Shown one piece after another: positions 19,614-63,757 of a stretch of 64,000 bases of DNA. A program made the translations under genes and the position numbers. The stretch is from Octopus sinensis. Taxonomy: Eukaryota. Each line of letters starts with the position of its first letter. The first letter of the stretch is position 1. The notes beneath the pieces were generated by a model. It did not search any database, had not been told where the DNA came from, and was given only the letters and a program-made list of their open reading frames with translations. The stretch lies in NCBI RefSeq assembly GCF_006345805.1, contig NC_043003.1:71114001-71178000 (forward strand), written 5' to 3'.

Positions 19614-19787
19614 GTTCAAAATCTGCAGATGCTTTGCGTGATCAGTTGAAGCTGGCAATTAAACAGAAAAACAAAGTCAATTTAGAAAGAGCTATTGCAG
19701 AATGCGAAGCGGCTAAATTACCAGAAATTGAAGCTGATCTCTACCAAGCTAAATCCTTTCTCAACTCTCTCGATAGTGGACGTCCAG
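19614..19787 (+). CDS. Repeat exon R1 (174 nt)
   Basis: ttgcag|GT...CCA G|gtaaat; GSKSADALRDQLKLAIKQKNKVNLERAIAECEAAKLPEIEADLYQAKSFLNSLDSGRP; not in ORF track. Confidence 0.88.
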
Positions 19788-20216
19788 GTAAATTTTCCAA
19801 TGGAATTTATTGATATATTTTATACTTTGTGGTGGCAATGCGACACGTTATAAGAGGTCCTCCTTGAAAGACTCGTTATAACATAACCGCTCATATTTTT
19901 CTATGCTGGTAGTTTTACCTGATAAACCTATACTGTTTCATGTTAACTAAAGAAAGTTTTTGATAATGATATAAATCTTATCACAGAAGCCCAGGATACT
20001 GTTATGGATATTCAAGAATTAATGAGAATCAAGATATCGTATTTTGGTCCAGCAAGATAAATGTACAAAATCAACAGAAATCTACCGTACTGTGCAGGAG
20101 CCAGCAAATATGGAGCAGTGTTTACAGGATAGTGTAGCAAATGGAGAAAGCAAATGGGATAGTGTTTACAGACAATCTTAAAAATTCAGACTACATAAGA
20201 CCCTATAGTTCTAGAT

Positions 20217-20475
20217 CAATGGTTCCCAAAGTGGCAGTACTGCCCTCTTGGGGGCGGTGGAAAGACGTTGAAGAAAAGTGGGATGACAATGGGGTGGCCT
20301 AAATGGGGTGATACATGTAAAAAAACATCTTAATAGGTAAATTAGGTTTAAGTTTTATTTGTGAAATACAGCTGTTTTGAATTTGCTGCAGAAAGTGTTC
20401 TATATTTGTGGTGGGAAGGGAAATGTGGCCTGGGTGCCAAGGGGACGACAGCCTGAAAAAGTTTGGGAACTACTG
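20217..20475. mobile_element. hAT (Charlie/Buster-like) MITE, 259 bp
   Basis: TIRs caatggttcccaaa / tttgggaactactg; 8-bp TSD ttctagat (20209-20216) versus ttctacat (20476-20483). Confidence 0.8.
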
Positions 20476-21246
20476 TTCTACATAAATAAAGTCTGGAGAG
20501 AATTGGAGATATTAAAGTTTCTCAATTTTTTGAGGTGTTCGTTTTTATGTTCGTTCAGAGAAAACTTTGGTGGTTTTTTTTTACAATAAAAAGGATGTTT
20601 ACATTTTCGAATATCCCGATAAAAAGGAACAGAAAAAAAGGAAGGTAAAATTTTTTCATAGAAAATTGTAGACGAAGTTTTTGAAATTTACTGGAGATAA
20701 TCTTTTGTCTGTCGGACAGAGAAAACTGTAGTGTTCTTGGAATAAAGAGGATGTTTACATTTTCGAATACTCAGTGGGGAGGGAAATGATAGGTATTCAC
20801 AGATGTAGATATTATGGGTTTTAAAGCTGATTGTTTATGTGTTCGAAAGCTGTAGACATGTAAGTTCCTTAACTTAGTTTGAGGGAAATTCAAAATACTC
20901 ACAGGAAACTGTAGATATTCCAGTCTTTTAGAGTTATTTTTCAGTTGTCCTATTGGGTTCTATCAGTGTTTCTGTGTCTTCAGCTACTGACAGATCAGAG
21001 CTGAGAAGAACACGTCCAGCCGCTGTCACGTTTTATTATTATTATATTCTTTCGGAGTCGATAAATTAAGTTCCAGTGAAACATTGGAGTTGATGTAATT
21101 GACTACGCTCCTCCTCCAAATTTGAGGCCTTGTACCTCCAGTAGGAAAGATTATGATTATTATTATTATCATTACTATTATTATTATTAATAATATTTAT
21201 AGGATTAAGGTAACTCCTCCAGAAGATATAGAAGCAAAAAAAAAAG

Positions 21247-21417
21247 AAGAGTGCCATTGTCATCAAGTGAACGATATTTCGATATCTCGTGTAGAGGAGT
21301 TATCTCAATCCTATAAATTTTAACCAAAATGAAGTAGATTGACACGTTTATTTTTTGAACCTGTGGAAGACACATGATATGTCGAAATATCGTTCACTTG
21401 ATGACAATGGCACTCTT
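21247..21417. repeat. Short inverted repeat (46-bp arms, ~77-nt spacer)
   Basis: aagagtgccattgtcatcaagtgaacgatatttcga pairs with tcgaaatatcgttcacttgatgacaatggcactctt. Confidence 0.75.
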
Positions 21418-21513
21418 GCTTTTTTTGCTATTATTATTATTATGATTATTATTATTATTATTATTATTATTATTATTATTATTATTATTATTATTATTAT
21501 CATTATTATTATG

Positions 21514-22255
21514 AAGCATTTCGTCCGCCTTTATATTCTCAGGTCAAAATCCACCAAAGTCGACTTTGCCTTTCATTCTTTCGGAATCGATAGATTAAGT
21601 ATCAGCGTATTCGACTAGTCCCCTCCTCCAAAATTTCAGGCCTTGTGCCTTTAGTAGAAAGGATTATTATTACTTTTATTAATAAACGTTTCGTCCGTCT
21701 TTATTGTTAGTTTTATTACTATAGCCTCGGGCCGATCAAAGCTTTGTCAGTGGATTTGGTAGACCGAAACTGAAAGAGGCCCGTCATATATATGTACACA
21801 CACACACACACACACACACATATATATATATATGTTTGTGTGTCTGTGTTTGTACTCTCGCCATCGCTTGACAACCGATGTTGGCGTGTTTACGTCTCTG
21901 TAACTTAGCGGTTCGGCAAAAGAAACCGATAGAATAAGTACTAGGCTTACAAAGAATAAGTACTGGGGTCGATTTGTACGAGTAAAGCTAGTGCCCCACC
22001 ATGGTCACAGTCAAATGACTGATACAAAGAGAAAAAAAAAGGAAAAAGAATAAGCATTTCGTCCGTCTTTACATTCTGCTGAGGTTGACATTGCCTTTCA
22101 TCCTCTCGGGTTCGATAAATTAAGTCGACTTTACCATTCATATTTTCGGGGTCAATGAAATAAGTACCAGTTGAACACTGGGGTCGATATAGTCGACTCA
22201 TCCCCTACCTCAAAATTGCTGCCCTTGTGGCAAAATTTGAAACTATTATTATTAT
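21514..22255 (+). mobile_element. Cluster of three SINE copies from two families
   Basis: 21514-21668 and 22052-22255 carry gtcgactttgcctttcat...gataaattaagtaccag. 21715-22040 carries ctatagcctcgggccga...gtaacttagcggttcggcaaaag...cagtcaaatgactga. Confidence 0.75.
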
Positions 22256-61169: not shown

Positions 61170-61985
61170 TTACAGACGGTATCTAATATCAGAGCCTAAA
61201 TGTTGCTATATAATATTCCAGACACCATCGTAGATGCAATCAAAATTCTCTATAAAAACACCATCGCTCAGATTTTATCAACTGTTGGTAATGAAAGTTA
61301 TCTGAAATCATGACTAGAGTAATACCCCCTTGTTGTTCATTGGAGCCCCGGACTACTTATGAATTGCAGCAACTAATGCAAAAGAAACAGACGTCATGCT
61401 TCAACTGTAATAATTCATACAGACTATGCAAATTGAGAAGACTAGGAAATAAATCGAACGTCAATGACAATAAGACTGGTTTCAACCATCCGGAAGAAGA
61501 CATTAAATCATCAAAAGCTACAAACTTCTGTTGCCTGGGATCATGGACAGAAAGCTCAAAGAGAAACAAGAGAGTAAGAACTAAATTGGCGTAATCAGCG
61601 CAATGAACAAGATATCTGTAAGATTGCAAAGAATTCTATTTAGTAGGCTCAAAATACAGTTTTATAAGAGGAACTGTGGAAAACATATTGGTATTTGTAT
61701 CTGAAAACAATAAAAAGCAGGTTAAATGGAACGTGTACCAAGATGTTAAGAACTATCATTCATTGAAAAGCGTACTATATGGAAATTAGCCAATATTATC
61801 AGACTTAATTTATGGGACATATTTGGCAAAGAAAAGACGAAGTTGTACATCAACTATTAATATGAGAAACAGTACATGATAAAAGAGGCAAACCTTGTTG
61901 AATATATGTGGAGCAGTTGCTGGATGGCAGTTACATTGAAAAATTGTATTGCAGAGATGATACAGGAAAGGGAATTATCTAATCG
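61170..61985 (+). mobile_element. Degenerate RTE-like LINE RT remnant
   Basis: Fragments YNIPDTIVDAIKILYKNT, F.CLGSW.ESS..., L.GTCTKMLR, LYG. across many frameshifts. Confidence 0.65.
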
Positions 61986-62247
61986 ACTGCTCACTGGAAT
62001 TCAAGTGTGCTCAACTGAAACATACACACACATCATTCTTCCTCTTTATCTCTCACTATTCTACCCCATCTGTCTCTCTTGCTGTTGCAAAAATGCAGAT
62101 ATCGAAACTTTATTAAATTAAAACAGGAAAAAAAAACAAATGGATAAATCGATTATAATTTATTTATGTTTAACTACATTACGCTTAGATAGGGGTTAAC
62201 ATACTAAAATGTTTTTCTTTATATACACTTTTATTTTTAATCATCAG

Positions 62248-62421
62248 CTACAAAAGCTCCTGATGTATTGGTCAGTCAACTGAAAAGTGCTACAAGACAA
62301 AAAGATAAGGCAGCTCTAGCAAAACTTATCATTGAATGCGAAGAAGCAGGTTATCCAGAGATTGCCAATGATCTTTGGAAAGCTAGAGAAACTCTTCATA
62401 GTATTTGTGGAGAATATGGAG
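62248..62421 (+). CDS. Repeat exon R36 (174 nt, type B)
   Basis: catcag|CT...GGA G|gttaga; ...ECEEAGYPEIANDLWKARETL...; not in ORF track. Confidence 0.87.
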
Positions 62422-62907
62422 GTTAGAGCATATTCTATTTTAGGAATACATATTTCAGTTTGTATTATATATGGTTAACTAGGAAGTTGAATGAACTTAT
62501 ATTTTGTTTTCCTTTGGAATTATAGTCATAGAATTTTAAAACGGAAAGACGATATATATTATTTTCTAGATTCTCTTTTGAGCACTAGCTCCCTAGTATA
62601 CTTCAGAAAATTGTGCGTAAATAACATTCTTAATACCTTTCTTGCATAAACTTATGTTTATTCTAGTTATTCGTAAATTAACTATTTTATAGAATATTTA
62701 TTTTTCTAAATGTTTCTGAAAACAGAAGTATTGCAAAAGTGATTATATTACCCTAATAAAAGAGCAACTATAACAGAAATAGAAGAAATTTTTATGATCT
62801 ATTCTCTGATAGAGTATCTGAGAAAAACAACGAACATAAACATTGCTGCTTTATATAATGACGATAATGTGATATATGTTACTGACTCGTATATATAATA
62901 TTACCAG

Positions 62908-63080
62908 GGAGTCAAACTCCAGAACTGCTTGCTGCTAAATTGAAGAGAGCTACTCGAACAAAAGACAAATATGCTTTAGAGAAAGCAATCAATGAGTGTG
63001 TAGCTTCTGGATTTCCTGAACTGAAACTTGAAATAGCAAAGCAAGAAATTTCCTTTTCAATCTTGAAGATTATGGTAGAG
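62908..63080 (+). CDS. Repeat exon R37 (173 nt, type A, apparent 1-nt deletion)
   Basis: taccag|GG...AGAG|gttaga; ECVASGFPELKLEIA, then the repeat consensus (ARNFLFNLEDYGR) continues in a shifted frame after gcaaagca at ~63035-63042. Confidence 0.75.
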
Positions 63081-63583
63081 GTTAGATATATTTTAAAATT
63101 AATTATGAGCTAAATCTGAAAGTCGTTTTTAAAAGTCGTTTTTAAATCTGAAAATCGGTGTTTGTAAAAATTTGAAAAATATTTATAAGTATTAAAATTA
63201 AATAATAACAAGCTTTTATTATGATATTTTATATTTTCATTTTGTTTTATTCTCTTAAGGCGGTACATATTTAAACTTAAATCACAATTGACTGCATGTA
63301 ATCTGAAATTAAATTTAACAACAAGGAATATAAGAACATCAAATGAAATCAAAATGTGTGGCATAAATGACACTTTTCTATATTTAACAAGTAAATAGAT
63401 ACGAATCAGAGAAAGGTTAACAAATATTGTAAAAAATACTTTTACTCTTATTATGTAACTAAATGACATGTCTACACGTAGTCAATAATGTTGAATGTAA
63501 AAATCGGATAGTATGGATCAAGCTAATGCATGCTTTAGCGAATGAATTATGTTACTTTAAAATAATCCATATTTGATTGGTAG

Positions 63584-63757
63584 GAAGAAATCACCGGGAT
63601 GTTTTGCGGGACATGTTATTGATGGCTATGAAAAGAAAGAGTCCACCAGAATTAAAGAAAGCAATTGAAGAATGTGAAGAAGCAGAATATCCAGAGCTCA
63701 ATGAAGAGCTACGAAAAGCTCGAGATATCCTGGAGAACTTGAGTGGTAGTAGTGGAG
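63584..63757 (+). CDS. Repeat exon R38 (174 nt, type B); gene continues beyond window
   Basis: tggtag|GA...GGA G|gtcagc; ...ECEEAEYPELNEELRKARDILENLSGSSG. Confidence 0.86.

Follow-up and report, generated by a model that had tools for sequence, protein, structure and literature searches.

Layout of the locus

The stretch of Octopus sinensis DNA analysed here (the window: all 64,000 nt from position 71,114,001 to 71,178,000 of contig NC_043003.1) is AT-rich (34% GC) and rich in microsatellites, with abundant (TA)n and (CA)n. On its + strand, five exons encoding a KY-type module and an adjoining charged segment precede 38 exons which encode 40 helical units of ~58 aa (19614-63757; Table 1). On balance, all these exons probably belong to one giant gene of the KY/Hillarin/LTD-1 family, of whose repeat array the window contains the first ~40%.

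A hidden Markov model (HMM) of the unit, built from clear units, was run across all six frames of the 64-kb window, and exon limits were set by AG/GT boundaries. The model strongly matches 40 stretches (44-92 bits), which lie on the + strand from 19613 to 63759; there is no match 5' of 19613 and none on the - strand. Most exons (31) are 174 nt long; the others are of 171 nt (three), 348 nt (two), 159 nt (one) and 173 nt (one). Together they contribute 6,935 nt of coding sequence, or 15.7% of 44,144 bp. The array is modular and its exons are symmetric: 36 encode one unit, the two 348-nt exons each encode a fused pair in the order B-A (unit classes are described below), and all 38 are of phase 1-1. 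Introns interrupt a Gly codon (G|GT) at each boundary: its first base, G, closes one exon, and its other two bases follow the AG at the start of the next.

At this base composition (stop frequency 0.074) a stop is expected once per 13.5 codons, giving ~167 in the 2,254 codons of the array; none is seen. Not one of the 38 acceptors (AG) or 38 donors (GT) is damaged. The introns have a median length of 835 bp, and paralogous introns have only a few fragments of dispersed repeats in common. A dispersed repeat of ~130-220 bp (70-78% identity) is common to introns 19788-22701, 35379-36606, 40321-41791, 54869-55983 and 57333-58402. Open reading frames (ORFs) resembling those of transposable elements, at 41000-41335 (+), 47809-48000 (-), 6089-6292 (-) and 17677-18205, have no Pfam matches.

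A preliminary description of this stretch, made from its letters, had given the same exon tally, which is reproduced exactly here. It had also reported unalignable introns and an absence of in-frame stops within units; both hold, with the qualification that the 173-nt exon has a 1-nt frameshift. Its figure of at least 40 units is correct for the window and understates the 94-96 of the full gene. As it stated, the array is still running at the window end; the deposited protein model P0165 has 94 units.

That the upstream exons are of the KY family, in line with the KY/Hillarin-like fusion of that description, is supported by two Pfam families. Transglut_core (PF01841) reaches 25.8 bits (cut-off 23 bits) on the spliced model P0157, in which the core exons correspond to those of the window; single window exons alone do not reach this cut-off. 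The KY-like immunoglobulin-like (Ig-like) domains (PF23265, Ig-like_KY) are matched in three stretches of exon 9660-11012 at E 1.3e-59, and an E-value of 2e-64 is also obtained for this family. The first exon extends beyond the 5' end of the window, which starts after the first 95 residues; no LIM domain is matched by Pfam in any of the full models P0157, P0025 and P0143. No signal peptide is visible at the N-terminus of the protein model.

Among solved structures, the transglutaminase-like core is nearest to Chlamydomonas FAP246 (7n6g), a ciliary central apparatus protein (E 2.8e-5). In the alignment with FAP246, H-C-W falls opposite N-T-W: the octopus core has Asn (NTW) in place of the catalytic His of HxW, and the Asp of WRLID is retained. 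The Cys-His-Asp triad is therefore incomplete in this alignment. The catalytic Cys may also be replaced, by Lys, judging from a KGSY motif at a position outside the alignment. The octopus core is probably not an enzyme because the catalytic His is Asn. A protein can belong to the KY family without the triad, as many members are regarded as inactive.

Between the KY module and the array lies an exon in which 58% of encoded residues are charged (E/K/R/D). This is a candidate ER/K single alpha-helix spacer.

Table 1. Features of the O. sinensis window. Repeat exons rest on a unit-HMM match and/or AG/GT boundaries unless a further basis is named. U, unit; A and B, unit classes.
Feature	Position	Strand	Basis or remark
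N-terminal part of transglutaminase-like core, partial exon	1..187	+	100% match to P0165 residues 96-157; donor AA|GTAAGT
Remainder of transglutaminase-like core and KY-specific segment	7838..8240	+	Matches P0165/P0157
Three KY-like immunoglobulin-like domains, large exon	9660..11012	+	PF23265, E 1.3e-59, 3 stretches
E/K/R-rich exon, candidate single alpha-helix spacer	12846..13223	+	Composition; in P0165, P0157, P0156, P0164
40-nt mini-exon (PEDSYFGRPSSTR), phase 0 to phase 1	19119..19158	+	In P0165/P0157; boundaries CAG|, G|GTGAGT
Repeat exon 1, U1, class A	19614..19787	+	HMM 68 bits; in P0165, P0157, Argonauta orthologue
Repeat exon 2, U2, A	22702..22875	+	
Repeat exon 3, U3, B-like	27161..27334	+	O. 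bimaculoides orthologue in P0160, 93%
Repeat exon 4, U4, A, 171 nt	28393..28563	+	
Repeat exon 5, U5, A	30276..30449	+	
Repeat exon 6, U6, B, 171 nt	30818..30988	+	
Repeat exon 7, U7, A	32185..32358	+	Sister-species ORF P0024, 98%
Repeat exon 8, U8, B	33405..33578	+	
Repeat exon 9, U9, A	33960..34133	+	
Repeat exon 10, U10, B	34478..34651	+	
Repeat exon 11, U11, A	35205..35378	+	
Double repeat exon 12, U12 B and U13 A fused, 348 nt	36607..36954	+	
Repeat exon 13, U14, B	37713..37886	+	
Repeat exon 14, U15, A	38665..38838	+	
Double repeat exon 15, U16 B and U17 A fused, 348 nt	39250..39597	+	
Repeat exon 16, U18, B	40147..40320	+	
Repeat exon 17, U19, A	41792..41965	+	
Repeat exon 18, U20, B	42908..43081	+	
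Repeat exon 19, U21, A	43938..44111	+	
Repeat exon 20, U22, B, 171 nt	45056..45226	+	
Repeat exon 21, U23, A	46928..47101	+	Unit chosen for structure model, pLDDT 87.6
Repeat exon 22, U24, B	49135..49308	+	
Repeat exon 23, U25, A	49841..50014	+	Sister ORF P0166, 97%
Repeat exon 24, U26, B	50850..51023	+	
Repeat exon 25, U27, A	51247..51420	+	
Repeat exon 26, U28, B	51702..51875	+	
Repeat exon 27, U29, A	53439..53612	+	
Repeat exon 28, U30, B	54013..54186	+	
Repeat exon 29, U31, A	54695..54868	+	
Repeat exon 30, U32, A	55984..56157	+	Sole A-A neighbour pair in window array from U5 onward
Repeat exon 31, U33, B	56649..56822	+	
Repeat exon 32, U34, A	57159..57332	+	
Repeat exon 33, U35, B	58403..58576	+	O. 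bimaculoides ORF P0076, 95%
Repeat exon 34, U36, A, 159 nt, without first 5 codons	59914..60072	+	Identical boundary in P0165
Repeat exon 35, U37, B	60393..60566	+	
Repeat exon 36, U38, A	62248..62421	+	Last window exon in P0165; 93.7% nt identity to sister contig
Repeat exon 37, class B, 173 nt, frameshifted	62908..63080	+	Sister exon intact, 174 nt; skipped in P0165
Repeat exon 38, class A, intact	63584..63757	+	98.3% nt identity to sister contig; skipped in P0165

The repeat unit, its alternation and its splice donors

The units are predicted to be independent three-helix bundles on flexible Gly-rich linkers (GGGRGG), as the preliminary description had supposed. An AlphaFold2 model of a single unit (U23, 39-sequence unit alignment) has a mean predicted local distance difference test (pLDDT) score of 87.6, with helices at residues 4-17, 20-33 and 36-53. 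In a 408-aa chain with three tandem units, modelled from a shallow alignment of four sequences, the unit blocks have means of 75-89, the Gly-rich linkers fall below 50 and the predicted template modelling score (pTM) is 0.24. Pfam and NCBIfam scans of one to five units find nothing above cut-off, and Pfam gives no match at E <= 10. The spectrin repeat (PF00435) was considered and rejected: it is not matched by Pfam at E <= 10 in one to five units, and no spectrin is among the Foldseek matches of the unit model.

The unit profile does match repeats of ~49 aa which protist myosins and related proteins carry in their tails (Rhodelphis, Symbiodiniaceae, Polykrikos); whole-library E-values range from 1e-10 (Polykrikos) down to 1e-24. 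The matched proteins P0013, P0104, P0150, P0142 and P0008 are myosin-motor and other long protist proteins with 6-18 copies of the repeat. A profile-profile comparison with hhalign gives 98.2% and E 5.9e-14 over 46 columns, for protist rows which were picked with the octopus profile. Both repeats have the three-segment motif LR..L..A...[KR]D...L..AI.E.E..G.....L..A[RK]..L. The protist repeat differs in its shorter period, in the lack of a Gly linker and of a conserved Cys, and in being attached to a myosin motor rather than a KY module. The resemblance may reflect common descent, or convergence of a simple amphipathic helical motif.

The units fall into two classes. The consensus of class A is.KSP..LRdqLk.Ai.qKDk..LEkaI.ECE.AgYPEL..DLrKARdtLESLGGGR and that of class B is.KtPd.LReKLk.A...KDK..LE..INECVAAGmPELD.DIq.AR..L..L.gg.; their hallmarks are ECE.AGYPEL...LGGGRGG and INECVAAGMPELD.DI respectively. 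In unsupervised clustering, neighbours differ in class in 87 of 94 pairs; none of 100,000 shuffles gave more than 70. Identity between units is 0.44-0.46 at even lags against 0.39. The alternation spans 30818-63757 of the window and all of P0165. Double-unit ORFs of more distant cephalopods have the B-A order in four cases out of five; P0007 is A-B.

Such a super-repeat, which is also found in nebulin, could match a periodic partner such as a filament lattice, with the units as binding sites on a scaffold or ruler. This explanation is rather unlikely. It draws on the strict alternation over 94 units, on the class-specific conserved surfaces of the consensus sequences, and on the B-A register of both fused exons and most fused cephalopod ORFs. 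However, the flexible Gly linkers and low pTM speak against a rigid periodic rod. Alternation would arise equally from duplication of two-unit blocks, or from selection against misfolding of identical neighbours.

The donors of the array are atypical. In 28 of 38 there is a T at +3, and 22 have the form G|GTTAG (for example at 28564, 30450 and 47102 of the window); both unit classes are represented. The same form occurs in a contig from a sister species (L001:486 and 1137). The five non-repeat donors of the gene, in contrast, are GTAAG, GTGAG or GTAAC. Because the G|GTTAG donor places TAG in frame directly behind the unit, retention of the intron would bring an immediate stop after most units (23 of 38). 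In a set of 135 cephalopod genomic ORFs, all diverged from one another, 45% have their stop exactly one codon past the unit, compared with ~7% expected. Since paralogous introns are otherwise unalignable, this stop-after-donor arrangement looks maintained.

Conservation and the full-length gene

Selection was estimated from the sister-species contig L001 (1,880 bp), which aligns to 61931-64000 of the window and covers exons 36-38 only. These exons are 94.8% identical to L001 with a single 1-nt gap, while the introns are ~75% identical in aligned columns and have 217 gap columns. The Nei-Gojobori method gives non-synonymous (dN) and synonymous (dS) divergences of 0.028 and 0.164; dN/dS (omega) is 0.17 for these three exons against this one contig, and not near 1. 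Synonymous changes number 16 and non-synonymous changes 11 (Fisher p = 1e-5), which shows purifying selection on the array.

Units U3-U32, U56-U65 and U69-U94 (numbered as in P0165) map one-to-one onto units of O. bimaculoides with 84-100% identity. The nearest paralogous unit within the gene is much more distant (median 58% identity, maximum 69%); judged by this divergence the expansion is old, and the copy number is stable. The preliminary description had likewise taken the expansion to be old and under selection.

Exon 37 lacks one A in an A-run near 63038 relative to the sister species, which leaves 173 nt and shifts the frame. The sister exon is intact at 174 nt and reads GCAAAAGCA where the window has GCAAAGCA. 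Because the sister exon is intact, and because the two differ by nine synonymous and three non-synonymous changes, the frameshift is either an assembly error, which is the likelier case, or a very recent lesion. In exon 38, divergence from the sister contig begins at the donor.

It is barely credible that the units are pseudo-exons no longer in use, left in a decaying relic. The frameshift of exon 37 would fit, as would a deposited model which skips nearly all window units. On the other hand, there are no stops in 2,254 codons where ~167 are expected, all 38 acceptors and 38 donors are intact, the exons are far better conserved than the introns (omega 0.17), and synonymous changes prevail (9 to 3) even in the frameshifted exon.

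A search of 1.84 billion representative proteins with the unit profile gave 253 matches, mostly single-exon cephalopod genomic ORFs. P0165, a 6,596-aa NCBI/UniRef prediction described as "uncharacterized", spans the KY part, the mini-exon and window exons 1-36; it matches the splicing derived here at every one of 2,197 residues. Its 94 units (residues 883-6340) are followed, past the window, by a conserved C-terminal domain and a Ser-rich tail. P0165 skips exons 37 and 38, probably only to dodge the frameshift; with both added the gene has 96 units, and the protein is ~6,600 aa overall. The gene is therefore already in databases as an unnamed prediction, and its unit has no curated family.

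The order of KY part, units and C-terminal domain recurs in other molluscs. In Argonauta hians, P0164 joins the KY part to orthologues of U1-2, U82-83 and U89-94 and ends in the same C-terminus. The abalone (Haliotis) KY or "LTD-1-like" proteins P0025 and P0143 have two and six units respectively, followed by a related C-terminal domain. This domain (~120 aa) follows the units in P0165, P0164, P0171, P0025 and P0143, that is, in octopus, Argonauta, another cephalopod and abalone. In that other cephalopod, an intron-free 1.3-kb Logan contig (L002/P0171) carries the last units, the C-terminal domain and the tail in one message. The C-terminal domain has no Pfam match, and a PDB sequence search gives none at E <= 10. 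A supposed resemblance to the dynein stalk/microtubule-binding domain is not supported, as there is no PDB match at E <= 10 and no Pfam MT match. The AlphaFold model of the domain, from a shallow alignment, is too poor for a fold search.

Other models of the locus are shorter. P0157, from a near-identical genome, has 2,069 aa and 16 units (U1-2, U48-55 and U89-94 only). In O. bimaculoides the locus is divided into at least five models: P0156 and P0065 contain the KY part, P0160 contains U3-U32 (94% identical), P0162 and P0163 contain U56-U94 and the C-terminus, and there are also fragments.

This division would follow if the array were one or more separate genes, unfused to the KY-like gene, as annotated in O. 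bimaculoides. There, P0160 is array-only, P0156 and P0065 are KY-only, and P0065 ends by read-through after U1; a spliced ORF across the junction was not found in the indexed search. However, phase-1 exons cannot start a protein without an upstream ATG exon, and P0160 starts mid-array without a Met. The 40-nt adaptor exon exists only for setting phase 1. Two NCBI models and the Argonauta and Haliotis proteins carry KY part, units and C-terminal domain in one chain. Phase logic, these one-chain proteins and the omega of 0.17 disfavour both separate genes, which are very unlikely, and the decaying relic.

A possibility that deserves more weight, though it is still doubtful, is that most window units are facultative cassettes. 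The common protein would then be short, like the 2,069-aa, 16-unit form, and long forms would be specific to tissues or stages, much as titin I-band exons are differentially spliced. In favour of this, P0157 goes straight from U2 to U48 and again from U55 to U89, the Argonauta model has orthologues of U1-2, U82-83 and U89-94 only, all exons are of phase 1-1, and the T at +3 in 28 of 38 donors is weaker than the canonical non-repeat donors. Yet conservation is no lower in skipped units than in included ones (98% identity between species in exon 38; omega 0.17), and the short models may be mere incomplete predictions.

The single giant KY-family gene remains the preferred reading, and several points weigh against it. 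The preliminary description had named transcripts joining E5/R1 to the exons downstream as a check; when an index was searched for an ORF spliced from KY through to R5, none appeared, and the only match was L002, a distant intron-free contig from another cephalopod. Likewise, no O. sinensis transcript was found which joins the KY exons to window units R3-R38. Since no spliced transcript was found, the joining of KY part and array is argued from gene models and conserved architecture. The O. bimaculoides annotation divides the locus into several genes, and exon 37 is frameshifted as assembled. Foldseek comparison of the unit model with the PDB returns generic helical bundles only (best E 1.6), and the missing packing between units is weak evidence because the tandem alignment had four sequences. 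Finally, the tether role considered below is drawn by analogy, while the present data cover gene anatomy, fold prediction and conservation.

The preliminary description was largely right on structure. Its fusion of KY part and units is supported by P0165, P0157 and Argonauta P0164, and its expectation of few units in other molluscan KY-like proteins agrees with the two and six of Haliotis. The unit is probably not confined to molluscs, given the seemingly related repeat in protist myosin tails. The description expected the exons to be missed or split by gene predictors: this is true of O. bimaculoides, with its five or more models, and not of P0165, which contains exons 1-36. The idea of an undescribed giant scaffold is correct insofar as no publication was found on these loci, nor on this repeat in the few Hillarin papers; a 6,596-aa prediction had already been deposited. 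The A/B alternation, the G|GTTAG donors, the lost base in exon 37 and the profile-level resemblance to protist repeats are new relative to that description.

Related arrays occur elsewhere. P0161 (O. sinensis LOC115214251), on the same contig and outside the window, is a second array of 2,023 aa with about nine near-identical four-unit blocks; it is either a recent amplification or an assembly artefact. Its precomputed Pfam list includes PF28494.1, which is absent from the Pfam version scanned and may be a newly curated repeat family or spurious. Small paralogues with three to four units are found at LOC118764272 and LOC128248363.

A possible giant tether

KY-family proteins matter for muscle and cytoskeletal integrity, as human KY myopathies show, and vertebrate KY sits at the filamin-C/Z-disc complex. 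The role of KY in muscle has been described (PMC6078408). The octopus protein resembles KY, Hillarin and LTD-1 in having a transglutaminase-like core followed by KY-type Ig-like domains, and in being cytoplasmic; the abalone "LTD-1-like" proteins also have its domain order. It differs from the family in its ER/K-rich spacer, the lack of LIM domains by Pfam, the replaced catalytic His (NTW for HxW), and ~94-96 helical units compared with 0-6. It is about ten times the size of vertebrate KY.

By analogy, the octopus protein (~730 kDa, cytoplasmic) may serve the cytoskeleton as a tether of great length, flexible and probably extensible. One end would be anchored by the KY module, in the manner of vertebrate KY at the filamin-C/Z-disc complex, and the opposite end by the C-terminal domain. 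The ER/K segment and ~95 bundle-plus-linker modules would supply reach and compliance. Spectrin and talin-rod chains are also long tandem arrays of three-helix bundles, with a role as cytoskeletal linkers or springs. The spectrin repeat, however, is ~106 aa long and joined to the next by a continuous helix, whereas the octopus unit has 58 aa and flexible Gly-rich linkers.

In gene structure there is a likeness to titin and nebulin. These genes also have one module per symmetric phase 1-1 exon, a super-repeat (here A/B), old and diverged neighbouring modules, and differential exon use; the octopus locus likewise gives models of very different length. They differ in fold and family, and we know of no G|GTTAG donor with an immediate in-frame stop in either. 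Since any run of octopus exons can be skipped in frame, and since most donors are atypical, the array would appear built for length isoforms; exon symmetry and weak donors would permit forms such as the 16-unit and 94-unit models.

A more speculative extension, which we consider unlikely as a whole, is that the array is a spring or ruler of programmable length, made from an ancient, uncurated eukaryotic three-helix module. The A/B alternation would then encode heterotypic pairing or a periodic partner, and the GTTAG donors would be a selected device. These donors might tune exon inclusion, or end mis-spliced messages cleanly at a domain boundary.

The unit is compact, is predicted to fold with confidence and lacks a curated family; defining it would annotate hundreds of orphan sequences. 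Loci of this kind expose failures of annotation: one species has at least five models, another a shortened one, and a third an indel of a single base. The conserved stop-after-donor arrangement offers a testable hypothesis on splicing control in modular genes. For the KY family, the octopus member is a natural experiment on what the KY module anchors. That each of ~95 domains in a row is conserved between species argues for a strong need of a linker which is both very long and compliant. A programmable spring or ruler, if true, would add a novel way of designing giant elastic proteins, in an animal whose body is soft and whose muscles act without a skeleton.

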